DNA from: Podarcis filfolensis
Taxonomy: Eukaryota
Assembly (NCBI GenBank): GCA_964270895.1
Contig: OZ185440.1
Direction: 5' to 3' (one strand)
Length of the DNA: 64,000 nt
Notes under the pieces: model-generated
What the model was told of the DNA's origin: nothing
What the model saw: the letters and a program-made list of their open reading frames with translations, nothing else
The model's database searches: none
Translations under genes and position numbers: made by a program
Part shown: piece after piece, positions 3,372 through 38,260 of the stretch
Position numbering within the stretch: position 1 is the stretch's first letter
Layout: every line of letters starts with the position of its first letter

Positions 3372-3473
3372 ATGTCGTCCTTGTATACCAGGAGTAAGGA
3401 GTTTACTCGAAACAGAAAGTCTCAGTCTGATTCTCCCCCATCGTCTCCTTCCCCGATTGCAAAGACACTCAGA
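3372..3473 (+). CDS. PPP1R12B: PPP1R12B sm-M20 (small myosin phosphatase subunit) isoform-specific first coding exon
   Basis: ACC-ATG start; encodes [34 protein letters not shown] (34 aa), which I recognise as the sm-M20 N-terminus. Ends at phase-0 donor AGA|GTAAGC and joins HERLSR in frame. Confidence 0.9.
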
Positions 3474-16581: not shown

Positions 16582-16598
16582 CATGAGAGGCTTTCCAG
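16582..16598 (+). CDS. PPP1R12B: PPP1R12B 17-nt microexon (HERLS-R)
   Basis: Branch-like GCTAAT, long pyrimidine tract, TATAG|CATGAGAGGCTTTCCAG|GTAAGC; matches the MYPT2 motif HERLSR. Confidence 0.93.
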
Positions 16599-17051: not shown

Positions 17052-17196
17052 GTTGGATGCAGCAAGTTCAAGTACTGGCACCAGCGATGCCTACGGGGAC
17101 CGGCCCTCTGGTCGCAGTGCCTACACCAGAAGAGAGAATCGCCTGGCTGCCCTCAGCAGCAGGACGGAGGATGACAGTAGCAAGGATTATAAAAGA
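17052..17196 (+). CDS. PPP1R12B: PPP1R12B exon (R-LDAASSSTGTSDAYGDRPSGRSAYTRRENRLAALSSRTEDDSSKDYKR)
   Basis: CCAG|G acceptor and AGA|GTGAGT donor; 17+145 nt restores frame; similar to mammalian LESGGSNPTTSDSYGDR...EEDSNRDYKK. Confidence 0.92.
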
Positions 17197-18396: not shown

Positions 18397-18501
18397 CTCT
18401 ATGAAAGTGCCCTATCTGAAAATCAAAAGCTGAAATCAAAACTGCAAGATGCTCAGTTGGAACTCGTCGATATCAAGACAAAAATTGACAAAATAGCCCA
18501 G
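18397..18501 (+). CDS. PPP1R12B: PPP1R12B coiled-coil exon (LYESALSENQKLKSKLQDAQLELVDIKTKIDKIAQ)
   Basis: Pyrimidine tract + CCAG acceptor, CAG|GTGAAG donor, 105 nt in frame, MYPT-family coiled-coil sequence. Confidence 0.96.
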
Positions 18502-18729
18502 GTGAAGAGACCTAGGAAACAAGGGATGTACTGGGATTGCAGCCAGACAGAAACAAATGTTTCGCCCTGGTGATAAGGAGTTAATAGCATTTGAGGAGGG
18601 CTATCACTGCTTCTCAGATAAAATAGAAGCAGTTCTATTCTTAAGAATTCTAATTCTAATTTTATTTGGAAAGGATTTATTTGTAATACTTTCTACTTTT
18701 GTGATAACTTTGGTTTTTCATTTCAATAG

Positions 18730-18783
18730 CAGAAGCAAGAAAAAACCTCTGACCGTTCGAGTATGCTTGAGATGGAAAAGAGG
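18730..18783 (+). CDS. PPP1R12B: PPP1R12B exon (QKQEKTSDRSSMLEMEKR)
   Basis: TAG|CAG AAG acceptor cluster, AGG|GTATGT donor, 54 nt in frame, MYPT2 motif EKTSDRSS-LEMEKR. Confidence 0.96.
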
Positions 18784-19760
18784 GTATGTGTTTCTGCTTT
18801 TTGGTGTCCACTTACTTAAAACTTAGCATGGTTTTAGAATGCATACTCATTTTAAAAGAGAAATATCACTACAGGAAGCTGATTCTGTTCCTCCTTCAAG
18901 AATCCTTGGCTTCTTGGCTTCTCATACTTGTTTACAGCATTTTTGTTAACTATAAAACTGTTCATTTCAGCATCCTGGCATAATAAGATACACGGTTTGA
19001 TAAATCACCACTAATGAAGCCCAGAACTTACTGTTCTAGCATGGCTGTTGATGTCATATAGTTGATTAGAGACGTTCCATTGATTATGGTTATATTTTGA
19101 AAACATGAGATCGAATAGAGTCAATTTTATCATAAGTTATCAAAATACGCTAACTCACTGTGTTTTTAAATGTGTTTTAAATTATTTTAAATGTGCAAGT
19201 TTCTTACGAAGATGAGTACCAAAAATACTTAAATTCCAGCAAAGTTTAAATCTAAAGATGAACACATAACAAGCTTAGTATGTAAGCATATTACGTTTGT
19301 GCTACTGAATTCCCTTTATCCAGTACAAAGCTCTGTTTCTTCTTGGGCTTATTGGCATGTAAGTTCTTAAAATACCTTCCAAATACTTTCCTTGGAAAAC
19401 AGTAAATCGTTTGTGGTTTCAGTGCCCTGTTTTGATTTTGTTTATTATTTGCTGGTTTTTTCCTGAAAATATTGCATTTGGGTTTTGTTTTTTTTAATGC
19501 AGACACTAAAACGGAGCTTTGTAAGATGTAGGATGAGAGGTACAATTGAGGTTGCAGTTCTTGGTAGCCCACAGTTCAGTGAAAGCAGCACTCACCTGGC
19601 TTCTGGTTGCATGCATTGCTGCTGCAAACTGAGAGGGAGAGAGGGAGGTCTGAGGTGGCAACAAAGCCAACAGGAGCATTGGGTTGTCTTCGTTGGTGTG
19701 TTTGCACTGCATCAACCTTAAAATCACCTCCCCCCTCCCATTTTTCATCTCGGTGCTCAG

Positions 19761-19776
19761 CAGCAAAGTGGATCAG
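19761..19776 (+). CDS. PPP1R12B: Candidate alternative frameshifting microexon (16 nt, or 13 nt via NAGNAG) of PPP1R12B
   Basis: 82-nt AG-free zone, C/T tract, CTCAG|CAGCAAAGTGGATCAG|GTGAGC. Lies between the EMEKR and EKRALE exons, the position of MYPT1 exon 24. Prediction only. Confidence 0.5.
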
Positions 19777-20555
19777 GTGAGCTACTGCCCTGAAAGCTTA
19801 ATGCCTCTTGCCTTGGAACATAGAGGTTTCCTCTAGCCATCCTGGCTCAATGCCATTGATTCTTGCCTTCTTGTCTAACACTTTCCATTATGGTGTGTGT
19901 GTGTTCTTTTTAAAGAGGTGCTTTCTTTGCACTCAGAGCTCTCAGCCAGAGGATAAATAAGAAAGAGTAACTTGGCACACCTAACCGCTGTAGTAAGATG
20001 ACGCTATGCCAGTTTTGTTTGTTTGGGAAATGGTACATCCAGTACGCAGCTTTCAAACTAGTTAAATTAAGTATCCTCAGGGTGCAATTCAAACTGTCCA
20101 CTATCCATAGGCTGGAACTGAAAACTGAGCTCTTTTCAATGACCCCACTGGCTCCTATCAAGCTAATGACAAGACAATTGATTGTCTGTGAGGTGAAAGG
20201 AGCTGATAGGTAGTTGTGGCCAGGAAGAAACAGCAAAAGGGCCTGTATAGAGCACAGGTGACCCTTAAGATTCTGGATTACAACTCCTCTTATCCCTGAC
20301 CATTGGCCATGCTCTCTAGGGCTAAGTGAGTTCCTCTATCTCTGGTGCAGAGGTTGGAGATGAGCTGTGGGAACACACCAAGAAGAGGTTTTTTGACATT
20401 GTTTGTTCTTAGTGTACATCTTGAGATGTTTGACAACCTTATTAATGCTATTAATGATACATTTTCCTTCACTGAGGGAAATACAGCCATAGCGTACATT
20501 TTCATGTAGAAAAATTACACAAAAAATGGTAATTGTGAAAATATTTTTTAAATAG

Positions 20556-20606
20556 GAGAAACGAGCTCTTGAGCGGAAGCTCTCAGAAATGGAGGAGGAG
20601 ATGAAG
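20556..20606 (+). CDS. PPP1R12B: PPP1R12B exon (EKRALERKLSEMEEEMK)
   Basis: AATAG acceptor, AAG|GTATGA donor, 51 nt in frame, conserved MYPT motif. Confidence 0.96.
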
Positions 20607-20989
20607 GTATGAACAATTCTTCATTTATTTTCCGCCTTCTGTACATAGTAGCATAATTTTGGATTGTCACATGACTCTGCTGGAGTTTTTTGCTGCAACA
20701 GATTAACAGGTGCCCCTCAGAAAATATTAGAATAGTGTAAGTCATTGTTAAAATGCTGGTATTGGATTAACCATTCATGCATGCACACCACTACTAGCTA
20801 TTGGGAATTTATTTATTCATAAAAATATAAGCCGCCTTTTATCCCTACAGGGCTCTCATGATGGTATTCAAAAACAAAAACAGATTTAGGCTATAAACCA
20901 GATTGAGAACATACTAAAAATTCTACATACTAAAAATTCAGAGCCATGCAGAATGGAAACTGTTTTACTGCCCCCCTGGAAATAAGTAG

Positions 20990-21660
20990 AGAGAAGCCAT
21001 TTTCACCTCCCTTGGGTGAGAGGGCCACCATTTTGTTACTGCCACAAAAAAGGCCCTGTCTCCTGCAGTCACCTCTTTAGGCAGTGGAACCACGCCGCAG
21101 GGCCTTAGAAGAAGATTGTACACTCCTATGGGAAGAGATGGCTTTTCAGATATCCTGCCTCAAGTCATCTAAGGATTTAGAGGTTAGCACCAGCATCTTG
21201 ATTTGTGTCCAGAAGCCAATGCAGTTGGTATAAAACAGAGTGAATGTGGTCTGTGCCGTGCACATCAGAAAGCAATTTGGCTGCAGTATTTTGCACCAGC
21301 TACAGTTGGCAAACCCTGTAGCCCCACACAGTTCGTGCTGCAATAAACTAAATGGCAGCTGGCTGAAGCATGCATCACTATAGCCAGATCCATCTTCTGC
21401 AGGAAGGGGCACAGCTAGTGCATCAGTCAAAACTGGGCAAAGGCATTCCTAACCATAGCAGCAACCGGATAATCGAGGACCAATGCCAAATCCAGTAAAG
21501 CACACAAGTTGTGGGAGAGAATGCATCCCTGTCCAAAGCAGGATATAGTCCAGATAAGATTGCTGACTACCAGAACCATTGACTTGGATTGAGCCTCAGT
21601 TTGTTGCCCCATATCTAATCCATCTCTGCATCCAGGCAGTGGTTCAGGACTTCCACAGCC
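20990..21660 (-). mobile_element. Decayed L2 LINE ORF2 fragment
   Basis: Minus-strand frames give AMVRNAFAQF, LQLVQNTAAKLL, DHIHSVLYQLHWL and QIKMLVLTSKSL, resembling L2 post-RT motifs, with frameshifts and stops. Confidence 0.75.
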
Positions 21661-23580
21661 TTCTTGGGGATTAGTTGATCAGGTAGGGCTGCGTGACAGG
21701 GAGTTGCTGGATATACCAAAATTTAAAGTGTGCTAAAAAGTCTCCCCGAAACGTCACCTGCCCAGAAAATAGAAATGTTTCCCAGCTTGCAAGATAAACA
21801 TTCCAGAGTTTTGTGTTGCATTTTCTCTTGCGTTTTGTATGCAGTGCCTTGCAAATGCCTCCTGAGTTTGTGTGCTCCATAACTCTGAGGCTCTTATACC
21901 TTTATGGTGATACCATTTTATTATGAAGCAGGATGAGGGTATCAATTTAAGTAGCAATGTGTCCTCTCAGTCCTCAGCCAACTGTTAGAAATACAGTGGC
22001 CACCAAGTGTCTTTTCCTGATAAAAGAAGGGATTTTTTTCTTGGTGCTCTTGCCATAGAGGTAAGAGGCAAAAGTGGACACAAGCTCTGGCCATGCAGTA
22101 CTGTGCATGTCTACTCAGAAGTTGGTCCCATTGAGCTCAGTTGGGATTATTTGTGTGTAATATATGATTGCTGCCTAAGAGAAGCACCCACTGCTGCAAC
22201 ATGCCAAAAACCAAGTCTTTGCGAAACTAGTTCTTACTGTATAAATGCATCCAATGCTTTAGGTTTCTAAATGGGAAAGCTATTAGTAAATGTTATAAAT
22301 GGTAAAAGAAAACAGAAACAACAGATTCTGTTATTGCACAGCACCTGCATGTAAAATTGCAATATGGACATAGAGAAGCCACTGCCTGTACGTTGTCTGG
22401 GAAAATGCAGTCAGTTATAGTTTTTCCATGTCTCCAAACAAACCACAAGCTGTCGCCAAGGTTCCTCTTGGCTTACCGTGCATGGTTTGTTTGCAGAAAA
22501 CAACCTGTGAGCCTTCATTCACATGTAACACTAAGCCAAACAACAGCTTAGTTCCAGGTAGTGTGGCACCAACAGAAGCAGGAGTGGAAAGAAGTGGTGG
22601 TGATTTTTGCTCTGTGTCCCTGCACACTTGCTTATCCACATTTAGCTATGGTTTGGCTTACTGTTACAAGCAGACTGTTCACTCTGTGTGTCTGTACACA
22701 GTTTGATTGTAACTAAGGCTTGTATGCTTTGTTTCTGCCAGTAACACATTAAGGTCTCTGGCCTTGAAATATAAAATGCCTAGTGGGTCAGACTTACTTT
22801 TGCCTTCCACTGATTATAGTATCTCGCAGAATCATTCCTGCTAATGTTAAATAAAATTCACTTTGGTATACAGATTCTCTTTTACTCTGAAACACTGTGC
22901 AGGTCAAAATGTGCAGCTGACAATTGTATAAAAAAGTCATAAGTGGAGATGTGCATTCACCTCAGACTTGTGCCTCATCTATGCTGAGGATCCCCACCTC
23001 TGGGATATTTGCACCCCCTTGGGATCTGAGGTGGGCACCCAAGTCATTGGAATCACCTCAGAGGGCTTCAAATGTGTTTGATATAATTTTGTAACCTTCC
23101 TCAATCTCTTTATCAATAGAAGATGACAGGCAAGTGAGGAGGCAGGCAGGCAGAAGAGGAGTTTCACAACTGAGCACTCTAGCTTCCAATTAGGAAATTT
23201 TACCAGGCTCCTCCTTTTACTTCCAATCACAGTACTTTTGGGAGGGATGTAGGAATAATTCCCCACCTGAGCATCCCAGCAAGGGAGTGCCGCCCTCACA
23301 CTGTTGCTGCATTTCTCTAGTGCACTTGGTAAAGGCATTTCAGCTTGTTGATTCTTTCTCTGACAGACTCCGCTCTAGATTTGGGGTGGAGAATACCCTT
23401 TTTGCATCTTTCCCCCTCATGTTCACAAGTCAGGATGTATGTGCAGCAACAGCAGAAGCTGCAATGTAATGGACTACTATTCTCCCACCGCAATTCACTT
23501 GCTGGCTTATGCAGTGACAACAGCACTGTAGCATGTTGCGAGCCAAACAGCTGCTCTGCTCTGCTCCTTGCCCGTTACAG

Positions 23581-23600
23581 TGTCACTGCTGGGTTGGCCT
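23581..23600 (+). CDS. PPP1R12B: Weak candidate 20-nt alternative exon (CHCWVGL...), second donor at 23689
   Basis: (TGCTC)3 plus pyrimidine tract, TTACAG|, donors CCT|GTAAGT (23601) and GAG|GTAAGT (23689). No homology support. Confidence 0.25.
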
Positions 23601-26368
23601 GTAAGTGAAAACATGGCGGGGAGGCTGGTGACTTCAGCAGCATCACTGCCAGGAAACCCAAGCAGTGTTGGGTGCTTGGGGCAGGGAGGTAAGTGTTGAC
23701 TCCAGCACACTCTCAACTGGTGCAGGTCGCAGCATATATGCTCTAGTTGTTGGAATATTTTCTACCTCATGCAAGAATTGTTTTGTGGGGCTTGGTGATT
23801 GGTACACTGAACATGCCAGGTCTTACACACATCGATATTTAAACTCAGTGTTACCTTTGTCTTCTGCTGCCTCTGCCTGCCGTTCTTTCAGTGCACTATG
23901 TCAGCTCCGAACTTGAAGCAGTCACTCTGCTCCAGCATGGTGTCTCCACACTGATTCGAGGAATGTGCCTTGTGAAGGCATGCGCCTTGCTCCTTCCTCT
24001 GTCTCTTTCTCACTGTCTCCAGAAGTGTCTGCTAGCCCACTTGCCGGCCTTCCTCTTATCAGGCTTGCTGGTAAAGGTGCATGCATTGCTGTTTCTCTTC
24101 CTGCCTTCCTCTTATGCCAGGACTGGGGGTGGGGGTGGGGTTGTGGGCCTTGGTGCTCACTTGGAATGCTAGACATGCAAGTTTTGCCTCGTGCTCACAT
24201 CAGCCCTTTCTTCTTCAGCTTTCCACTTCCTGTGACTTTGGTGCAAGGGCACCTCTACACCCACAAAACCACAGGGGACAGGCATGACACCTCTTTTTTA
24301 TATATATAAAAAAGAACCACCACCCTCGGTTTGGCAGGCTTCATCCCCTCAGAATAGACTACAATGGAAATGTCATCCAATTCTGCCAAAATATAGGTCT
24401 TCTTGATTTTCCCCTTGTAGTCAATGGGGAAGACATCGGGTGCTTCGGAAAATGAGGCGAGGCGACCCTCTGCCTTGGATCCGAGGCGAACTGCGATGTT
24501 AAGCCAAGCCACCAAGCCGAGGCAACCCCCAGTCCGAGCCAATGAGAGGTGGGTTCCAAGGCCATTTTTTTTTCTTGTGCACAGCCCTAGTCATGAGGTA
24601 TGCATTTTAAATCTCATGGCAGTTTTGGGCAAAACTTTTATAACTGCATTTCTTCCCACTCATTCATACTTCATGGCTCCAGAATATTGCTTGAAGGACG
24701 ATTGATAGCACAAGTAAGTACATGAGAGGAGTTGTCAAGCTTCCGGTTTCCTTGCGCCACCATTTGAGCTTTCTGTCTAAAGACATACAGATTGGTGCTG
24801 GACTGGGCAGGAATTTGCCTTTTCAGGCAGCTCCTTTGACATGCCATCCCTTTTTTGGACATCTGCTATAAAGAAGTGCTGTTTTCTGGCGATCATGTTT
24901 TTCTGGTAAAGGCAGAGGCAGCATCTTGTGCTTCCCTGGTGACCTGAAAATATTAAGCTGGCTTCACTGTACTATATAGGTTTACACAATATGCAAATAC
25001 TTCTGCTCCCAAAATGTGTCTGTTCTTTTGTCTGCCCCCTGGTGCTTATTTCCCTAGAACCTAACTTCATTTCTTGGTGGTGGTGGTGGGGAGAAATGTT
25101 TCTGCTTCAAGAACAGGAGCTGCTGCATCCCTGAAACCATAGTAGTGATGAAAGCCATTTCCTGCCTTGCTGGAGATGGTTCCAATTTATGTCCTTTATG
25201 TTTTTACTGAGTGTGATAATCCTTTGAAGTCAAGATCTGTTTCGACTTGGGGGGGGGGGGAGAGTTTCAAAAGCGGAAATTGCACTCCATCTTACAGCAT
25301 GATCCTCAGTTGCGGGGGATGGGTTGCACCATTGGCCTCTCTAGAGGTCTTATTAAAATGTAATTATTTGAAAGCTCTTAAAGAATTAAAATGAGAACGC
25401 AGAGGGGCAAACGCAACACCACCTTGAATTCAGCTACAGAAAATAGCTATACTGTACCTTGTTCTGAAGGATGGTGTGACTAGCAACAACAACAAAAAAC
25501 CCTCCTAAAAATGTACTTGTAAGAAGAACAATGTTGTTGTGATACATGTAACCAATATGCAGTAGTTAACAGGATTTTATCCTTCAGGTGTGATTGCTGA
25601 AGTGTTTGGCTCTGGAAACCCTAAAGCAGCAGTACTGATTTATGTGAGGTGGTGAAACTATGAAAATCCTCGATAACCTTATTTACTATTTTTCTTCTGA
25701 ACTACCTTTTCTAAATAAATGTAGTGCCCTTGAGTGGTCCGTCAACTTTGGGTGTGCTGCCGTAATATTACAGGCCATTTTCAGCATGTCTGCTTCTCTC
25801 GAATGACATCCATTTCATGCATTACATGCCTTATCTGTCCACAACTTCTTTTTATAGCCAAAGTCACCTTGAGTTGACAAAGCAAATATGCACGCATCCT
25901 GCCTCAATCCCTCTTGTGCTGTGGTTGCATTTTGGCTTACTCCTTGTCCAGGAACTGCTTTTTCAATTTACATTCTTTCCCTGCTGTACAGTCACCTCTT
26001 TTCTTGCTGTCAGCAACTCACTTGGAGGAAGGAAGGTAAAAAACTGAGTTTGACACTGAAGCAGTGTCGTTAGGCTCTCTGGGCTGCTTGATCGCTTTGC
26101 GACTTGGCTGAACAGAGACACAGCTCAGCTATATCAGCTTAATCAGCTGGAATGTTCAGCAATTAAGCCTTTTAAATTATTGACAGGTTGGACTTTATCA
26201 TTTTTAGTAGTGAAACCTTTGATGCAGAATTCAGTTTCTTTTCTGGCCCGGCTGCCGCATTTATGATCTGTCCTCCTATGCAATAAAATTATTGTGAGCT
26301 TCTGAAGGACTAAATTAATGAAGCATAAACCAGACACACCAGCATTAGGATTTCCTAATAGTCACAGC

Positions 26369-26422
<54 letters not shown>
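26369..26422. repeat. (AAT)18 microsatellite
   Basis: Direct reading; abuts a reverse-oriented retroelement 3' end. Confidence 0.97.
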
Positions 26423-26484
26423 TTATTATTTGTACCCCGCCCATCTGGCTGGGTTTCCCCAGCCACTCTGGGCGGCTTCCAACA
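26423..26484 (-). mobile_element. L2-like retroelement 3' end (5'-truncated)
   Basis: Reverse complement TGTTGGAAGCCGCCCAGAGTGGCTGGGGAAACCCAGCCAGATGGGCGGGGTACAAATAATAAA followed by the (ATT)n tail. Confidence 0.7.
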
Positions 26485-28189
26485 AAGATGAAAAATACAC
26501 TAAAATGTATTTAGATGGGCAGGATAAGGATACTGTGTTGTGTGTCCCTCACAAAAATGTTTGCAGAGTTTGCTAACCTTTTCGTGTTTTTGTCTTATGG
26601 GCTTAGTGCCCTGTACTTTAAAAAAATAAAATAAAATGACTCTCACAGTTGAAAATTAAGTAAATTATATCCAGATATCTGTTTAGCCAAACAGTTATGG
26701 AGAGCTTTTGGTTGGAGCCTGGATTTAGTCAGTAAATCACTATGCTTCAGTCAATGAAGAAGAGAAGAGTAGAATGGAATGCAAGTTAATGGAATATATT
26801 TGCTTCTGCAGAAAATTCTAGGTTGCTGTACCACAACCATCCCGGAAGTAACAAAAGGATGCTGTTCCATTGGATTTGTGTTGCCTTTTCTGCAAATTGT
26901 TGTCACATGGATGTTGTATCTCATATTTTGAGATTATGTCAAGATTATTCCCCATCCTACTGGCCCAGTAAAACTTTCTGTAGGGTGTTTATATCCTCAG
27001 TTATATCTTCATCATTGTGTTTTCTTCACTGTCTTACAAAGGCATTTACGTCATGTCTCAAGTAGACAGATTCAACGGCTCAGTTATACCTTTGAATGAA
27101 CACACAAAATAATATTCCAACAGAATCCCTACACCTTTCACGTCCTGCCCATGTTGTTTTATTATTACACCATATTGAAAGTGAAATGCATTAGACATTT
27201 CTTTATTTAGAAAATTGGGTCCTTTTAGAGTCTGCATTGGAAACCCTTCTGAAGCAATTGCCTTTGATGCTATAAAAGCAATTTCAAAGCACTTAATTGT
27301 CTGTATACTTGGCCTTTAGTGTTCATACAAGATTTTAGTCCTATTTATCCTAATTTATGTGCCATGAACACATAAATTAACACTTGTGTTTCATGCCAGT
27401 TTGGGACAGTTAGGCATGCTGACCATTTTTTCCATACGCATATATGAAAAAGTGTGTGCTTGTATTTAGAGGGGTGTTTTTGAAGATTCTGCATCAATGG
27501 TGTTTAGTGTAAAGCTACTGTTTGGCTAAATTGTGGAGCACAAATTCAGCACGGGGACACTTACAGACTGCACAGGCTATAAGAGTTGTGTATTGTGACA
27601 GTATTCAGCATTGTACAAACCAGTTTCCCTTTCCACTGCAAATACTACCACATGTTGTAAAGTGAAGGCTAGCATTAGACTCATTTTAAAGCAATTTACT
27701 TCAGCTGCTACAACTATCCCCTTTTGCTATGCAAAGCCACTTTGGCTGGGATGTGGGTCATATAAAGCTTTTATAAAGATACTTAACTGCCCTATTGGTG
27801 CTCTTCCAACCAGCATTAGTCATCTGTCAGTACCTTGCAAAAGGACTTTAAAAGTGCTGTGCGCAAGGTTTTCCTGATGTGGTTTTCAGCCATGGTGAAG
27901 TTTCTCACTCCATTTAAGAGCTATAATTTTTCACCTTTATGGTGTTTCGTTAAATTTGAAACTTAGTTAGGTTCAAGCCTTAAGAGAATGAACAGCATTC
28001 TCTGTCGTTTCTTTTTTGGTTGGTCTAGTGCTTTAGTATGTTGTCCAGCTTCTTCTGTGCTTTCACTGCTCTCCACCTCTCGTTGCTGCTCTTCTTTTTT
28101 TTCTTGCTTGCCAATTGAATTCATGTTTCTGTGCTGTTTTATATTCTCTGTTTTGTCTTTGTCTATCTCCTCCATGTCTCACTTTGCAG

Positions 28190-28324
28190 AACCTTCACCA
28201 GCTCAAACAGATTCACACTTTGAGGCAGATGAATGAGCAGCTGCTGGCCGAAAACAGGGCTTTGACCCGGGTTGTAGCCAGGCTCTCGCAATCCGCTGAG
28301 ACCCCAGAGTCAGAAGAGCTATAG
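28190..28324 (+). CDS. PPP1R12B: PPP1R12B alternative C-terminal exon ([44 protein letters not shown])
   Basis: TTTGCAG acceptor after a very long pyrimidine tract, in frame with MEEEMK. Closely matches the recalled mammalian alternative C-terminus [33 protein letters not shown]. Confidence 0.9.
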
Positions 28325-28973
28325 CATCTCCCCCTCCAGTTGATCTCTCCTCTCCTTCCAATCTTCCAGGCAGGTCTTTGCTCTTATTGTCTGACTGAGC
28401 TATTCCCTACCCTTTCTACATTCTTCCTAAATGTGGCAGATAAGGAGCGTGACACGCAAATAGCAGTATGGAAGTCACTGCCTGTTCATATACTAAACTT
28501 TGCATTTCTAATGCGTACAAGGTACTTCAGTCACTTCTTTTCAGGTATACATTTCCCCCATATGGGTTCTGCATCTCAGGATGATCACCGGCCTAATAAT
28601 AGTTTCGTTCAGGCTTTATTTTGCCTTTTTAAAGCGTTGTTGCGTAAGCACTGGATGAATGAAAGAGGCAGAACAAACACACAAAAATCCAGCCACCTGG
28701 TTTCCATGACTGTGAAAAAGAATAATGCAGTTCTGAAGGTAAATGTAGGATATCATTAATACTAACAAAATATATGTAAGTGATCAGAACTGGGACATAC
28801 GGCTCAGTGTTAAAGATGGGTTTGTATTGAATATTTTTATGAAATGGTGCAGTATCTGGTGTGAGCTAACACCGATGTAATCCAGCAATGTTAAAAAAAA
28901 CACAGTTTTGTCATTGGGGAGGTAGGTTGTATTTTAGCTGTGGTTTTGTAAGGATCTAAAGCTTTTAGACGGC

Positions 28974-29325
28974 GGGACACGGGTGGCGCTGTGGGTTAAA
29001 CCACAGAGCCTAGGACTTGCCTATCAGAAGGTCGGTGGTTCGAATCCCCGTGATGGGGTGAGCTCCCGTTGCTCGGTCCCTGCTCCTCCCCACCTAGCAG
29101 TTCAAAAGCACGTCAAAGTGCAAGTAGATAAATAGGTACCACTCCGGCGGGAAGGTAAACGGCGCTTCCGTGCGCTGCTCTGGTTCGCCAGAAGCAGCTT
29201 AGTCATGCTGGCCACGTGACCCGGAAGCTGTACGCCGGCTCCCTTGGCCAATAAAGTGAGATGAGCACCACAACCCCAAAGTCGGTCACGACTGGACCTA
29301 ATGGTCAGGGGTCCCTTTACCTTTT
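28974..29325 (+). mobile_element. Full-length Sauria SINE (Squam1-type)
   Basis: Head GGGACACGGGTGGCGCTGTGGG...GGTTCGAATCCCC, tail ...GACTGGACCTAATGGTCAGGGGTCCCTTTACCTTT, 10-bp TSD TAAAGCTTTT (28957-28966 / 29326-29335). Confidence 0.93.
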
Positions 29326-32283
29326 TAAAGCTTTTCTGCTAATTGTGCATGTAAGTTGTGAGAGAGAAAGTACCGGAAACTGCAAAACAAAGATCCAAGT
29401 CCTCATGTTTGTTTATTTATTTCAAAATTTTCATAACACACAGATAACTGTCCCCCCCCAAAAAAATACTAAATATGGGGGGGCAGCAAATTAAAGAACA
29501 TGCAGCATTTTTATTTAATGAAAGCCATTTTTGAATAGTAAAGCTTATAAATGATACGTGTTCATCAGAAAAAGTAGGTATAGATGTGTTTTTTTTAAGG
29601 ACTAGATAGCTTCATGGAAGATATGAGTATTGATGTTTTTGTCAGAGGTCAGGCTTACGTGAGTGGGGAAAAAATTGAGTGGCCCCCAGTCAATGCCTCA
29701 GGTTTTCTCAACACTATAAAGATTCTACCCAGTTAGAATGGCTTTTTGCAAAGCACACATGAACAAAATAAAACCAATTGTTTTGTTATAATGTTCTTTA
29801 CTGATGCTTTGAGCTCTCCTGAAGCTTTTAAGTTGCACAGGGTGTTTGTTTTATGTGCTCGGTTTCTTATAGGTTGGCATGCTACGCTTGCTACGTATAG
29901 CAGCTCTAATGCAAAAGTGTAAGTCTTTTTCTCTTGAGAACTTGCTTCAGTGAAGCAACAAAGCAAAGATTTGGTCCTTTGATACTTTCTCCCTGTATGT
30001 TGCAATTCATCTGACTGAAATATCACTATAAGGTACCATGTTTCTTTGCAGATGCTAAACATTACAGGGACATACCATTCAGGCACTTTGTCTTCTATTT
30101 CACAGTTGTATTACTTAATATACCTGGGATCTACATTTGTACTGTACATGCAGAAAAGTGCTTTTCTGGGTATTCATGGAAACACCACTAAAGCTCGTTG
30201 ATTCCCCCCATACATATATTTTCATAGCTTGTGTTTAGTGTGAATGTTTTTAATGGCTATCATGTAGTGAATCCTGCATAATAGTTTTGGGGAACACCAG
30301 ATGTGTTGTGTAGTAAATTACACATTAATCTTTTTGTCCCCCTTGCCCTAGTTAGACCAGTCATCTCTTATGTTTGGGCTAATTTGCTTTGAAGGAACTA
30401 CTGAAGGATGCCATTGGACGGATGGTAGAACTTGTTCTGACACCCCATGTTTTGTTAATAATCTCACTTGGGCCTTGCTTTCCTATTATAAAATGAAAAT
30501 AATGGTTGTACTTGTCAAAGTTGCTTGAGACATTCTAGAAAGTGTATGTCTGACTGTTGTTTGCAGGCTCATTCTATAACTACCTATATAACATTAACTA
30601 TTCACACCATCGTGTGAAGCTCAGGATGAAACTATGAAGTTCAGCTATCATTTTCATACCGGAAACCTATTTGCATATTCAGGCCCCACAAAGAGAAAAG
30701 TGGAATGCTGATTTTATAAATCCAATACCATTCCAATCTCTGCTTGCAATTTTTGGCGATTTTCAAGCAAATATTAAAGAACTCTGATAACCTGGGATGA
30801 AATACCTCACCATTTGGTTTTGTTGCTACTGAATGGTCAAATAAATGTGACTACATCTGTTGCAAAATGTCCTAAATTTGCAGCATCTCAGTTACCTGTA
30901 TGAAATCATAAAGTTTGTTCCTCCAGTATTGACAGTAAATCTGTGGTGGTTGCCTTTCTAAATATTCAGAATGCCAAGTACTGTATAAAAATTGAAACAC
31001 TGAACAGGATTTGGGATTGTACCTCTTTACCCTTCTCATTGCTAGGCTAGGTCAAAGGTTCACCACGTTGGCATGGATGGAGGAGAGTTTGTGTACTTCT
31101 TATCCTATCCTGTGTCAAAATAGCAAGGTCAGCAAGCTGTCAGTCATGTATTCCCATTAGCAACAGGCTCCCAATAAGTCTGTGTGCAGAAAGGTGCACA
31201 TAACATAGCCCACCTCCCCCTTCTGCCATGGTTGGAGTGTCCTTTGTGGCTTTATCTTGACCTAGTCTCTTCTCCCTGGGCTAGAGGTTGGGCATCGTTT
31301 CAATATCCCTGATCAGGCCAAGCACCTGGTCATTTATTTCAACAGAGGCCAACCTCTAGGAATTCCTGGGAGCTTGAGGGGCTGGCAAAATGCTCAGGAG
31401 TCTGGAAAGCAAGCTGTCATAATTAACCATGTGCTGCATACCTCAATTAGTAAAGGCATAAGAATTCCAGACTTAAGCCATGGCCCAAAATAGATCACTC
31501 TTGGTTGTCCTTGCCCGAAATCACTTAGCATTTCTGGGCACCCAGTACTAACCCTTACTTTTAATGCAATATATAAATATATTGCATTAAAACAAAACTT
31601 TTATCTCGTAAATTAGTTGTTAATCAAAGAGATATTTTATTTTATTTAAAGAGCCCAGTTTTGGTCTATAATCTACTGTATATTTTGATTAGTTGTTCCT
31701 GAGATCAAGAAAAGTAGGCTTTCATCTACATTGAGATGCAACTGGATGCCAACCCTAAGTTTTCTGAAAGTATGCAACTTTCCCTTCTGAGTTTAAAAGT
31801 GAGAGATTTATTTTGCATGGGATTTATCCAGGTGTGAAGGAACAATGCTACAAGGCAAGTGCATTTCCCAAAGTGAAGTAAAGCGAAAGAGTGCAAGTAG
31901 CATTGTCCAGGATGAAATGCCTTTCAAGTTGTTCTAGATTGCAATTGTTCTCCAAAATGTACTTCTTTCTCATAATATTTCTGGGTATAATTTCCTGGGC
32001 TTACAAATGTCCACGAGTGTAACGTCTAATCTAACATACTCAAGTAGATGCTACTCTGTATATGTGAGAATGGAAGAGTCAAATTCATGTTTAATCTTAG
32101 AGATATGAATATGAAACTGATACACTTCGTTGGTGTGGCTTAGTTGCTTTTGAGATCAAATCCATTTTCGATTAACACTAGAAATGCTTTCGTTTGAGTG
32201 GTCGTGTGTTTCTCCCCCACCAGAGCTGCATAGGAATTTCAGGACAACCAATACTGAATTGTTTGGATCTTGTCTTTGAACAG

Positions 32284-32370
32284 GTTTTGACAGAACTGAA
32301 GTCCGACAATCAGCGGCTGAAAGATGAGAATGGAGCCCTCATCCGTGTCATCAGTAAACTCTCGAAGTAG
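32284..32370 (+). CDS. PPP1R12B: PPP1R12B terminal exon, leucine zipper ([28 protein letters not shown])
   Basis: AACAG|GTTTTG acceptor; canonical MYPT C-terminal leucine zipper; TAG at 32368-32370. Gives a 186-aa sm-M20. Confidence 0.98.
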
Positions 32371-35300
32371 TATATTGAACATAGGATGGGCAGAAAGAGG
32401 AGATATTTGTGCACATGCTGCCAACCCTGCCACCTGCTTCTGATCTTCCAGTTGAAAGAGCAGCTGGCATTTCAGACACGGATCAGCTAGCCCCACCCTT
32501 CACTGCTCTTTGCACCTTGCTAGGCATTCCCATATTGCACAGTGCTTATCCTTCCCCCCCAACACAGCATGCCCCGCCATGTTTTAATATTTTTGGAATG
32601 TTGAAGTAACTCATTTGAAGGGACAAAAGACTGGGTTGGCGCTGTCTGAGCTGCCCAAACGATCTGCTGTAAGCTCCATATCCGTCCACCATAATCTGAT
32701 GTAAAGAAGAATCTACTGTAATAAGTGATATAGAAGTGACTCCATAGCGTTGACCCAACATGTCTTAAGATACTGTCTTGGAGTAGGAATAATGAGTGAA
32801 ACTAGGAATTGCCACTGAGGATTTATCAATCTCCATTCTGGAATTTGGAAGTCTGCGGTGCTGGTGAAAGCCATGATGACTTATTTCTCTGGGAGTCTGA
32901 CAACAGTCACTTGGCTTGGAGATTCGTGTTTTCCATGTGTCTCAGTAGCTAACTGATTTATTTAATGTAAGATTTTTGATAATTTAATTTGGGGATCCAA
33001 TCACTGGTTCTCCTTTCTGTTTTGCTTCACTTTTGCCTGCTACCCTTTGGTGGTTCTTGCTGTTTTTTCCATGGGTGCCTTCTTTGGTACTGTTTAATAA
33101 TAACGTGATCTTACAGCCTCTGCATTCTTTGGCTAACAGTTTGCCCCTTGATTTTTCAAGACTTCTGGTGGAAAGAGAGCTAACCAGCGAAAAGTGCTTA
33201 TTGAATGAAATCCCATAGACACAATGCCAAAATACTTCTTTATTAGCAAGATGTTTGGTTTTTCTACATGAAAAACCTCACAAAAGACCTGGGCAAACAA
33301 ATCACATTTATGTTAACTTGCCAATAGATACGCATTCCGTTGAATAGGTGAGTGTTCTCAGTTTTAACAACAGCAAGGTTTGAGAGATGATGGATAGATG
33401 TGCCTATCCCTGTGGAAAATGATGAGCCTCAATCTTGGTGGAAAGTCTTTGCAGTAGCATTCTATGATGTCTGAGAATTCTGATACCATGATCATTTGCG
33501 CAGTTGTAAGACATGAATTTGCATTTAATGAGGGCATCAACAGCAGGACCTACATTTCTCAAAAAGCCATTTCTCTGCATACTGGAAATGAACGAATTCA
33601 TATTTATGGGTTATCATGATGTAACTAATTTGCACGCTCTGTTCTTCTGGATACTACAGAGAACCAGATTTCATCTGCAGAACCTGTTAAGGAGTTTCCT
33701 GTCAAAATGGCAACTTGTCTGTGGACTTGCTCTGTTCTTTCCCTGCATTCTTTTAATTCTCACAATTATTTAAAATAAGGAACTTTGGGATCTGAGAATA
33801 ACTACTCTTGAAAGCATACAAGTGAGCAGTAGAAATTCAGACATTTCATTCAGCATTTATCAGAGGGGGAAGATGCTTTTTTGATCAGTTATGGATCAGC
33901 TCTGAGATGAAGACAGAATTGTGCAGAGACTCAGCAAGACTTCTTCCTTTCTTACCCCCAGGCACTCTCAGAATCTCCAGAGGGCCCCCCCCCACAACCC
34001 TTGAGCACGTTTGAGGGCATACCAGGGACTTCAGAAGGAAGGAGAGGACGTTGAAGTCCCATTGCACGATTAGAAATCTGTTTCACTCAAATATAGAGAC
34101 TCCATATGTTTGCACTCCGTTTCGGAGTAGAACTGTATGAATTCAGTTAATAACCAGTGGATATCATCTTTGCATAGAAGCATCTCAAAAGACTAATTCA
34201 GGCTTCTACTATGGTGAACATAGCGTGTCCCTTTGAACAGAAACAAGGTAAACTCTGAGTTCCTAGCAAACTATTGCTTAAAAAAAGAAGCACCAGAAAT
34301 ATTTTCTGACATTATGTTTCATTTTAAGAACAGCAGATAGTCAGGATTCTGGATGGGTCAGATAAAATATCTGGTACAACCTCTTATACTCTACTAATTT
34401 TATTTGTTGCTTTTCTTACATCCAGTGCTTTTCTTCAACAGTTACCTTCCTACCAACCTTGTTTCAGAGCTAGAGAGGCTTGTGGGGGTTGTTTTATACT
34501 GGCCACAACATGCACTGATCTCTGTGAGTGGTATCTTCCAGCTCAAGCATTCTAGCTCACCAGTCTAGCTGATTTTACACCGGTGAGAGTATTTGGCTGA
34601 ACTTTTTCAGACTCTGCCATTTAACAGCACAGAAGGAGCAGGCATCTGGTGCTTATGGTCCATTCTATAATGATCCCTACATTCTCCTGTTGTCAGTTCT
34701 CACTTAGCATACAGTAGGTTAAGCATATTTCACAGTTTCAATGTGCGGACTTTAAAAGACACAGACTATGGTGGCTAATGCAGCAAGGATGGCTTGCCTG
34801 TGGCCCTGCAGAAGTTGGAGGGCTCCAGTTCCCCCCAGCCCCAAACAACATGGCCAGGGATGGTGGGAGTTGGACTCCAGCAGCATCTGAAGGACCACAG
34901 ATGGCCACATTGATACAGCATGAAGGATGGTGACCTATGAAGTTGAGCCTTTTTAACGTTGGGATTTGATATTTAAACTTGAATTCTGTCCAGCCTGAAA
35001 TTACGTGAGCTAATTAATCCTGTTGACAAGCCAAAACACTATGATATCTAGTGCTACTGAAAGTTACTTAAGCAGGTTATTTTGGGGGGTCACCAATATC
35101 AGTGTTGTCCTCTAAGTATCCTGTGTCTTGACATTCTGGGCTTCGTGTCATGTAAAAGATAATCAAATTTTTACTTATTTTAATACATAGCTTTGTCTTC
35201 CTTAGTAAGGCTTCCCTAAACCAATCACCTGAGAACCCATTTTTATTCCAGTATTAAAGTTAACACTGGCCTGGATTGGACAACCATCTCATCTTAAAAA

Positions 35301-38260
35301 ACTGAGGTATGAATGAGAGTTCTTGCCCCCCCCCCCCAATCATGCTGTTATTTTGTCCAAGCTGTGACTAAACCAGGAATAACTTGGGGGAAAGCCTGGA
35401 TCTTAAATCTTAGTTTGAATTTGGTTTGACAATCCTGTCTTGTTCCAAAGCTGGTAGCCATAGTTTCACAAACTGGAAAACACTGGTAAATAGAGGCCCT
35501 TGTTGAAACACAACTCACTCAAAAGGGAGCAGCCGAGGGGCTGTGTACAGGAGCAAAATCATATCTTGATTGATTAAGCTGATATATGATTGTTCAAATG
35601 CAGGCTATTATTTTAATATAATGTTTTAACCAAGGGAGTAGACAATTCAGGACAGTCCACTCATAAGCAAATTCATGCCTGTTTTTAAGAAAACCCAGAG
35701 AGAAAATGTTACTGCTACTGAATTATGATTGCTTTGTACTGGTGCGTTTTAGTGTTCCAATGGATTTTATATAATGTTAGTTATAATTGTGAAGTCTGCT
35801 AGAATATTCTCTACATAAAGTACAAATTATGCGGAGAAAGCACTGCAAGTTTATTCTGTGAGCTGTGAGAGCTTTTAACTGGAAGGCACTGGGTGGTTTT
35901 TCTTAAAACTCTTCTGCCTTACTGCTTTCTTACTCCCAGAAGCTTCTACAGCTCAGTGTACATCCTAAGACGTACTTGCATGTCGAAGGTCTTAGAAACC
36001 TCTTCCGCATCTGTGTTGAAGTTCCCGTGCAACTTTTTTGATATAAGAAGCAGAGCTTGGAGTAAGGAAGGAGCGGGTTTCATTGCTTGCAAATTGTGAA
36101 CGCGAGGTTTATGTGCGGTGGCTTGTTGGTCTGAAGCAAAGTTTCAGAAGAAGCTAGAGGCATGCAAAAAGGGCCAAGTTGAAGGAAACAAATGCAGATA
36201 CAGAAGTAGTATTGAGAGCTGACATATTGTGGTTGAATGCCTTGCATTAAAGGAGGTTGTGTTGTACTGCTAAAATACAACATGAATAATATGGATGAAC
36301 AGCTGTCATATGCAGAGAACTCTTAACCAGTGGAATGGAAATGGAATTTTAAGTGGGGGGTAGATTTAGAGCTGCAAGAGCATGTATACTTGATTTGATC
36401 TGTATTTTGTGACAGCTGATGATGCAGCATCTGTGCACTGTCCATATTGATTTACTGTTAATGGAAGGAATTAAAGAATGACTCTAGAGATCTGACCAGA
36501 TATAATTCAGTCAGTCATCTTCAGTAAGTCAGGGTTTAAGAGTGCACTGTGTTTTATCAAATCAGCTAATTTCAGATTTATTGGTGGTTTCTAGTCCACA
36601 TAGGAATAATTATTATCAGAAGCCAGTCTGTAGAAATCTGATAGCAAAGTATTTGATGCCATAGGACTGACTTCTTTTAAGGGCTGTGGATACAATCTAG
36701 TCGGTGGTTGTTCATTAGCATTTAAAAGTCTTATTCTCATGGGATAACCAGGAATGATAAGACTCGCCATGATGATATTTGCCAATAGGTCAAATCGTAT
36801 GCAACTCCCTGACTGTGCTTGGGAGACTTAACAGTTGTTTTTCATTAGGGAATAGCTAGTCTGTTCCAAAGGCTGGTGAGCTTAATGTATGCCTGTAGAT
36901 GGTAAAGTGCAGAATGTAGTCCTTTCCCCCACAAAGGATATTGACTGAATATCTCTCCCCTGCCCTGCCAATTCTGCCATTACCAGGTGATGGTAGGTCG
37001 CCAAGGCCTGGGATTTACTGACAGTGAATAGAAATCATGATTGAAATCAAAATATACTTGAGAGATGATTTCTACTGTATCATGTTTGCTTTCCCCCATA
37101 ACCACTATAATTCTTTCTGAATTAGAGAGCTGTTTGTGAGCAGGCTCTTAGCACGTTTCCGGACGACTTCCAAATTCCCACTTTGATTCAAATGCAGATT
37201 CTCCTTAACAAACATGTCTCCAATTTTTTTGAATGGGTGTTCATCTGTATCTGAGAGTGATCATGTTTTGCTAGGACTCCTTGCAAGCAAGTCAGAAGGC
37301 AGAAATGTCTCCCCCCGCCCACCCGAGATAGAAATTTGTCCTTTGCACTCACACTGATGCCCCCTACTTTCATCTTTGTTTTCCTTTATTCTACTTCACT
37401 CCTGCCATATTAGCCCACCTGTTGCACAAGGCAGCTTCTCAACTCAAAGTCCAGCATTTTTGGATGTACTCCTTCCTTCAGCGATGTTAAGGGGCCTGTT
37501 TCAAAAGGCAATTTTAAGTTTATTTCAAGCTAGCAGACTCCCCAAGGCCTTTTCCCTGAGTGACTTAGGTTTGGATCATGATCACTTTCATGTTTGGAAA
37601 TCCTTTTGCATGATTCTCCTAGAAGCAGCATGTTCCATGAAGGGCTTTTTACCAAGATTAACTCCACAAGCAGCTCACAGGTGAAATTTAACCCAATTCC
37701 TAGGGGCAATTCTTTTCTTCCTCTGTTCCTTTCCCCTGACAACTGTTCTCTCTTTTCCTGGGGCAAATTGGACCCTTGGCATATGTGACTTTCAAGGTGT
37801 TCTCAGTAAATACTCTTGAAAAACAGCACAGCCCAAGCTGTTGCCACAGGGCCTTTTGTGTTGTCCCCTCCCCTTGCTTCCCTCATGTTGTTGATGAATC
37901 TAGTAACAAGTCCCCTCTGCAAATGCTAACTCGTGGAAAAGAGTGGTGTTATGCACTTGGCTCGCTAACTTCCCAAGCTGCAAGTATTCTGTACTTACCT
38001 GTTTTAAGGAGAGTTTTACAGATTGTTGTAAATACACTACTTGGAGAAAAGACTAGCCTGTGAGTGATGAGAAAGAATGTATTTTTATGCAATTTTTTGA
38101 GTGGCCTTTCAAACTCTTGAGATGAATGGTTTTTGTTTTCTTGATTGTTATATAGTATTCTAAGTATATGTTTGAAAGTTTGGGGATAATATTCACATCT
38201 ATGATGCTTGTAAACACAACAGTATTTATAAATGAATAAAGTGCTTTAACACAGCCTGAG
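32371..38260 (+). other. PPP1R12B: PPP1R12B long 3' UTR (approximate end)
   Basis: Repeat-poor sequence after the stop codon up to a U-rich region ending in AATAAA. The end is inferred. Confidence 0.6.
38235..38240 (+). terminator. Probable distal poly(A) signal of PPP1R12B
   Basis: AATAAA preceded by U-rich/TGTA-containing sequence; TE-rich DNA begins ~400 nt downstream. Confidence 0.6.

Follow-up and report, generated by a model that had tools for sequence, protein, structure and literature searches.

Two alternative leucine-zipper tails predicted for PPP1R12B in the lizard Podarcis filfolensis

Results

A second zipper exon at the 3′ end of PPP1R12B

We analysed a 64,000-nucleotide (nt) stretch of DNA from Podarcis filfolensis (assembly GCA_964270895.1, contig OZ185440.1), referred to here as the window, which contains the 3′ end of PPP1R12B, the gene of the full-length protein MYPT2 and of the small subunit M20. 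Between the penultimate coding exon (exon B) and the terminal exon, which encodes the canonical leucine zipper (LZ), we found an alternative zipper exon that is conserved across vertebrates and, judged by its sequence, clearly non-random. Very probably the gene makes a conserved two-way choice of C-terminal tail. Three short candidate exons that would remove the zipper lie at 19761, 23581 and 26014; long introns contain AG..GT pairs by chance, and these three are most likely of that kind. A sequence-only reading of the window had proposed a multi-state C-terminal switch, with a canonical zipper, a swapped zipper or no zipper; the two alternative zippers held up, whereas the no-zipper state in this lizard did not.

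From its sequence we identify the gene as a lacertid PPP1R12B (MYPT2/M20), whose span at 3372–32370, on the plus strand, encodes M20 together with the C-terminal part of MYPT2. The seven coding exons of the canonical product (Table 1) total 558 nt, or 186 codons, and their peptides agreed exon by exon with P0181, a 186-amino-acid (aa) XP model common to Lacerta agilis and Podarcis muralis. The peptide of the first of these exons was 100% identical to residues 1–34 of P0181 and was missing from the full-length snake MYPT2 protein P0276, in keeping with an M20-specific exon. The constitutive 17-nt microexon had strong splice sites (position weight matrix (PWM) scores of 9.7 for the acceptor and 11.5 for the donor), and its peptide, HERLSRL, is kept in the M20 proteins of reptiles, birds and mammals. 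The features that the earlier reading had named, among them those at 19761, 28190, 23581 and 26014, all exist at the stated coordinates or within 1–2 nt of them. Its tail lengths were also correct by exon sums, the predicted products being 186 aa long with the canonical zipper, 202 aa with the alternative one and 151 aa if the 19761 microexon is included.

The alternative zipper exon has an in-frame TAG at 28322–28324, which stops translation ahead of the terminal exon. Its leucines L11, L18, L25 and L32 are spaced seven residues apart and span about four heptads, the pattern of a predicted leucine zipper, and asparagines N15 and N22 occupy a-type positions as read from the sequence; the canonical exon carries leucines L5, L12, L19 and L26, and its asparagines, N9 and N16, stand at the same core positions. 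Both exons begin with xLxxLK and finish with ..ENxAL.RV..(R/K)LS. When residues 156–186 of P0181 were used as a tblastn query, a match was found at 28199–28291 (38.7% identity, E=0.019). We then compared both tails with Pfam family PF15898 (PRKG1_interact), the cGMP-dependent protein kinase interacting coiled coil of MYPT proteins, whose curated gathering threshold is 32.4 bits. The alternative tail scored 36.5 bits over profile positions 71–101 and the canonical tail 51.8 bits over positions 74–101. Because both fill the same PF15898 positions, the two tails probably alter partner choice and not the presence of a zipper. By these comparisons the canonical zipper exon and the 28190 exon stem from an old duplication, after which the latter diverged.

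Conservation was assessed at the orthologous loci of Phrynosoma, Crotalus, Aix and Chelonia and in two short contigs of unknown sauropsids, which with the window make seven sequences. The order of exon A, exon B, alternative zipper and canonical zipper was identical in all the sauropsid loci compared. Only four positions varied among the first 33 residues of the alternative exon in the seven peptides, and the DNA differences in its zipper-coding part were mostly silent at the peptide level. A phmmer search with the alternative tail against 1.84 billion representative proteins returned 41 matches at E≤0.001, which lay at or near the C-terminus of the matched protein in all except the weakest match listed. 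Many of these were open reading frame calls on genomic contigs. Others were spliced models ending in ..EEEMK-NLHQLK.., among them many small subunits of fish and several full-length isoforms of alpaca, and a Crotalus horridus protein with the alternative tail was found by a separate, later search.

Models from other species bear either tail and never both, save one odd fish model (P0063). The locus thus shows two homologous neighbouring exons of which a single copy is translated per transcript, as in a tandem exon duplication. Related alternative zippers of the form NL[RP]QVKQ[IV]Q[TA]LRQ... were seen in the MYPT1-like proteins P0019 (sturgeon) and P0025–P0027 (fish-like). Because MYPT1-like proteins carry this related tail, the exon duplication seems, from the sequences, to predate the split of MYPT1 and MYPT2 (PPP1R12A and PPP1R12B).

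The human alternative tail presumably matches isoforms reported by Arimura et al. 2001. In PMC8373072, PPP1R12B appears among the curated human substitutions that arose by tandem exon duplication, and as one of a small number that have orthologues in Drosophila. The lacertid exon occupies the same position as that known exon (after the ..EEEMK exon and before the canonical zipper), belongs to the same peptide family and adds the same 16 residues; we regard it as the orthologue, with no substantive difference, and its use in the lizard as likely from its conservation. The choice between a canonical and a swapped zipper was therefore borne out by conservation, by the PF15898 match and by spliced models elsewhere, and it was already known.

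A donor-like motif and the spacing of the alternative stop

A 13-nt motif, TCCAGGCAGGTCT, located 3′ of the alternative stop (window 28361–28379), was invariant in the seven sauropsid sequences, and similarity dropped sharply just beyond it. When its GCAG/GT (the slash marks the exon boundary) is read as a donor, the cassette measures 182–185 nt in the sauropsids compared. The distance from stop to GT was 47–50 nt in all seven; the window has 49 nt, which places the end of the exon at 28373. This spacing fits the ~50-nt rule for escape from nonsense-mediated decay, and its conservation is consistent with selection for such escape. The claim of the earlier reading that the stops of the main candidates fall within about 50 nt of the last junction holds on paper, at 36 nt for the 19761 candidate and 49 nt for the 28190 exon with its donor at 28373.

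We propose the following mechanism. Translation from the internal start at 3372 would produce the small subunit M20, and the same gene would produce full-length MYPT2. Direct splicing of exon B (20556–20606) to the terminal exon at 32284 would give the canonical four-heptad zipper. Splicing of exon B to the cassette at 28190–28373 would give a different four-heptad zipper followed by an acidic end, with the stop 49 nt before the cassette's own donor, and inclusion of the cassette would turn the terminal exon into 3′ untranslated region (UTR). A stop inside the ~50-nt window would spare the message from nonsense-mediated decay.

Several observations weigh against a plain two-way choice. The cassette donor at 28373 is weak by PWM (2.0). 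The donor at 19776, which belongs to the 16-nt candidate at 19761, ranked 4th of the 3389 GT sites in the window; moreover, the gene employs a 17-nt microexon elsewhere, and the equivalent intron of MYPT1 contains an exon that shifts the frame. Annotation and contig assemblies can easily overlook minor isoforms. RNA coverage was sparse as well. The RNA runs came only from a sister species, which shares about half of the 31-mers, and few reads fell on 18650–24649: exon A received about two and exon B one, the 19761 bin had none, and the rest lay in repeats. Conserved coding contigs had probably been filtered out of this read set, and 28190–32370 lies outside its range. Since no junction transcript was seen from this species or a close relative, we infer the use of the cassette and of its 28373 donor in this lizard from conservation only; escape from decay and a difference in partners are likewise predictions.

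Zipper-less products and other readings of the locus

A zipper-less product might exist by a route other than the three short candidates, which we consider unlikely. One such route is a 35-nt candidate cassette at 19324–19358, missed by the earlier reading, which has the best paired splice scores within the intron between exons A and B (acceptor 9.4, donor 8.8) and whose inclusion predicts ..EMEKR YKALFLLGLIGMRNELLSGSSQKWRRR*. A homologous element of 41 nt, flanked by equally good splice sites, is present in Phrynosoma (L003 7761–7801). In Crotalus (L004 12527–12549) the sequence is kept, with z=5 relative to shuffles, but lacks a GT donor, and the Chelonia match is marginal and without splice sites; in neither of these two species did the homologous element have a GT donor or a good acceptor. 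Because the surrounding 5′ part of the intron is conserved in general, the conservation of the element may have another cause, and the tail that it predicts was found in no protein among the M20-size searches. We also considered this element as a homologue of MYPT1 exon 24 (E24) on a by-eye likeness (K..[YF]LLG, in the same frame), which was not significant against shuffles. The other route is read-through of an unspliced exon B donor (window 20604–20612), which gives ..EEEMKV followed by TGA. Models ending in ..MKV were found for tinamou (P0216) and gecko (P0271), so that ..EEEMKV is a possible zipper-less product of intron retention or early polyadenylation, although these models may be mere retained-intron predictions.

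Zipper-less small subunits of this gene are on record elsewhere. PMC13755552, a 2026 review, cites chicken M20 isoforms that have or lack the leucine zipper (Chen 1994; Mabuchi 1999), derives M20 from the MYPT2 gene and describes heart-specific variants made by alternative splicing; a zipper-less chicken M20 is a product of the same gene in a sauropsid and of the kind that had been proposed for the lizard. Bird models, however, lose the zipper after exon B and not by an exon after EMEKR. A model of the duck Aix galericulata ends in PDAQLSSLEGNGEDL*, encoded by a third tail exon that lies between exon B and the alternative zipper (L005 15111–15158). In Scatophagus argus, XP models of one gene carry the canonical zipper, the alternative zipper or a short zipper-less (Q)DAPLRFRCGYQP tail, the last from a separate exon after exon B; this is the kind of multi-state tail that the earlier reading had envisaged. 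For neither the duck PDAQLSSLEGNGEDL exon nor the fish (Q)DAPLRFRCGYQP exon could a counterpart be detected in the lizard, in Phrynosoma or Crotalus, or in the turtle. The candidate at 26014 was tried as a counterpart of the duck or the fish tail, and no significant DNA or peptide match was found; nor was it significantly similar to the turtle region.

The alternative zipper exon could instead serve as an alternative last exon and end the transcript at a polyadenylation site of its own, rather than being spliced to 32284. The weak donor (GCAG/GTCTTT) would be explained by such an arrangement, and homologous substitutions at the C-terminus usually involve alternative poly(A) use according to PMC8373072. 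Both zipper exons are also present, 92 nt apart and unspliced between, in one fish transcript contig. We nevertheless hold this reading to be distinctly unlikely. The closest AATAAA/ATTAAA is at 29250, more than 900 nt downstream, the GT-containing 13-nt motif is invariant while its flanks have diverged, and the constancy of the stop-to-GT distance would be expected if a downstream junction has to respect the decay-escape window.

In the fish RNA contig just mentioned (L007 666–790), the canonical zipper exon comes 92 nt after the stop of the alternative zipper, and the arrangement in that fish resembles either a pair of alternative acceptors for a single terminal region or a tiny intron that was retained. 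In at least one fish, then, 92 nt separate the zipper exons, as judged from this single transcript contig, as compared with 3.9 kb in the lizard.

A more specific proposal is that a squamate- or lacertid-specific frameshifting cassette after EMEKR (19761–19776 or 19324–19358) switches the zipper off in some smooth muscles, which we find very doubtful. The known model for such a switch is E24 of MYPT1, a 31-nt or 13-nt LZ-minus cassette that directly follows EMEKR, as indicated by primer positions in PMC5087845 and by the exon numbering in PMC9367544. We searched the A–B intron for the published E24 31-mer; the best match lay at 18892–18918, was equalled by 35 of 500 shuffles and fell at neither 19761 nor 19324. 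In a human study, a PPP1R12B LZ-minus transcript was not found in uterus.

The 16-nt candidate at 19761–19776 would, if genuine and perhaps specific to lacertids, be an E24-like cassette that adds a zipper-less ..EMEKRQQSGSGETSS tail and brings the number of tails to three. It lies in the intron equivalent to that of E24, right after EMEKR, and has the same +1 shift and an early stop in the next exon: spliced to exon B it reads QQSGSG+ETSS, and the TGA stands 36 nt before the exon B donor and hence before the last junction. A long pyrimidine tract is present upstream. Its CAG/GTGAGC donor is the high-ranking one noted above, but the other top-ranked donors fall mostly at non-exon places in the exon map, with the exception of 16598, the donor of the real 17-nt microexon. 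The acceptor is mediocre, only 637th of 4378 in the window. With the same thresholds, one to four comparable AG..GT pairs were obtained per orthologous intron in four sauropsids, at unrelated places.

Conservation did not favour this candidate either. The exon and its splice sites were not recovered in relatives, whereas the peptide of the real 17-nt microexon is conserved from lizards to mammals. No lacertid–Phrynosoma intron alignment was obtained around 19761, the alignable part being the first ~520 nt (18784–19300), and local alignments of 19730–19795 with the introns of Phrynosoma, Crotalus, Aix and Chelonia scored in the range of shuffled controls. The candidate shows no detectable conservation and is not similar in sequence to E24, and the region around it is not a repeat in the window or in the loci compared. 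A QQSGSGETSS-like tail was absent among M20-size proteins (searches of 61–194 aa and 51–161 aa; full-length isoforms were not searched) and from the clusters to which ten squamate M20 models belong; the tail occurred in no protein or member of the NCBI lacertid M20-size clusters examined, nor elsewhere. Depth in the 19761 bin was zero, with the reservation that few reads crossed exons A and B. Because of the strong 19776 donor, the real 17-nt microexon and the frameshifting exon of MYPT1, a lineage-specific exon remains conceivable, but we judge the 19761 cassette highly improbable, and a zipper-less state by way of 19761 is not supported beyond its splice-like letters.

The candidates at 23581 and 26014 fared no better. 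In the 11.6-kb intron that follows exon B, they make up 3 of 19 comparable AG..GT pairs, which is the chance level. The third, zipper-less state that had been proposed through 19761, 23581 or 26014 thus consists of AG and GT letters, and conservation, proteins and reads lent it no support.

Features of the window

The coordinates of the exons and candidates are given in Table 1.

Table 1. Exons and candidate exons of PPP1R12B in the window (a slash marks the exon boundary at a donor)
Feature	Position	Strand	Remarks
M20-specific first coding exon	3372..3473	+	34 aa; donor AGA/GTAAGC
Constitutive 17-nt microexon CATGAGAGGCTTTCCAG	16582..16598	+	codes HERLS plus 2 nt
Coding exon (..LDAASSSTGTSDAYGDRPSGRSAYTRRENRLAALSSRTEDDSSKDYKR)	17052..17196	+	sequence, match to P0181
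Coding exon LYESALSENQKLKSKLQDAQLELVDIKTKIDKIAQ	18397..18501	+	sequence, match to P0181
Exon A QKQEKTSDRSSMLEMEKR	18730..18783	+	phase 0; ends ..EMEKR; donor AGG/GTATGT
Candidate cassette, 35 nt	19324..19358	+	+2 frame; acceptor 9.4, donor 8.8; unproven
Candidate microexon, 16 nt, CAGCAAAGTGGATCAG	19761..19776	+	+1 frame; ctcag acceptor, donor CAG/GTGAGC
Exon B EKRALERKLSEMEEEMK	20556..20606	+	donor AAG/GTATGA
Candidate exon	23581..23600 (20 nt; or 47 nt to 23627)	+	chance level
Candidate exon	26014..26035 (22 nt)	+	chance level
Alternative leucine-zipper cassette exon	28190..28373	+	coding 28190–28324 (44 aa), 49 nt UTR; putative donor GCAG/GTCTTT
Terminal coding exon, canonical zipper	32284..32370	+	28 aa then stop; 3′ UTR runs on downstream

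The first ~520 nt of the A–B intron (18784–19300) showed 71–76% identity to Phrynosoma, and the remaining intron was unalignable; by its conservation the former may be an intronic regulatory region. Two short segments, 20273–20313 and 22104–22140, attracted many sister-species RNA reads and contigs, all of which continued into unrelated sequence, and they are probably fragments of dispersed repeats. Over 32284–37283, contig sets of the sister species that are probably RNA held as many words of the window as larger, genome-sized sets of that species, a comparison in which the RNA type was only guessed and the genome-sized sets, of unrecorded type, are probably DNA. These word counts suggest a long 3′ UTR downstream of 32284.

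Discussion

The choice between two zippers in lacertid PPP1R12B is well supported, ordinary and already known from other vertebrates. The small new details are the invariant donor-like motif 3′ of the alternative stop and the 47–50-nt spacing between stop and junction that is kept across sauropsids. To call the switch richer than binary, as the earlier reading did, overstates its novelty, given the zipper-positive and zipper-negative chicken M20 cited in PMC13755552 and the three-tail fish models.

A third tail state would be moderately interesting if true. A genuine frameshifting cassette would mean three regulated tails in a reptile and, in the paralogue, a counterpart of MYPT1 exon 24 that either evolved independently or is a relict. 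The response of smooth muscle to nitric oxide (NO) and cyclic GMP (cGMP) is set by whether MYPT1 is spliced with or without its zipper. A comparable or richer switch in MYPT2/M20, if true, would bear on the regulation of both cardiac and smooth muscle.

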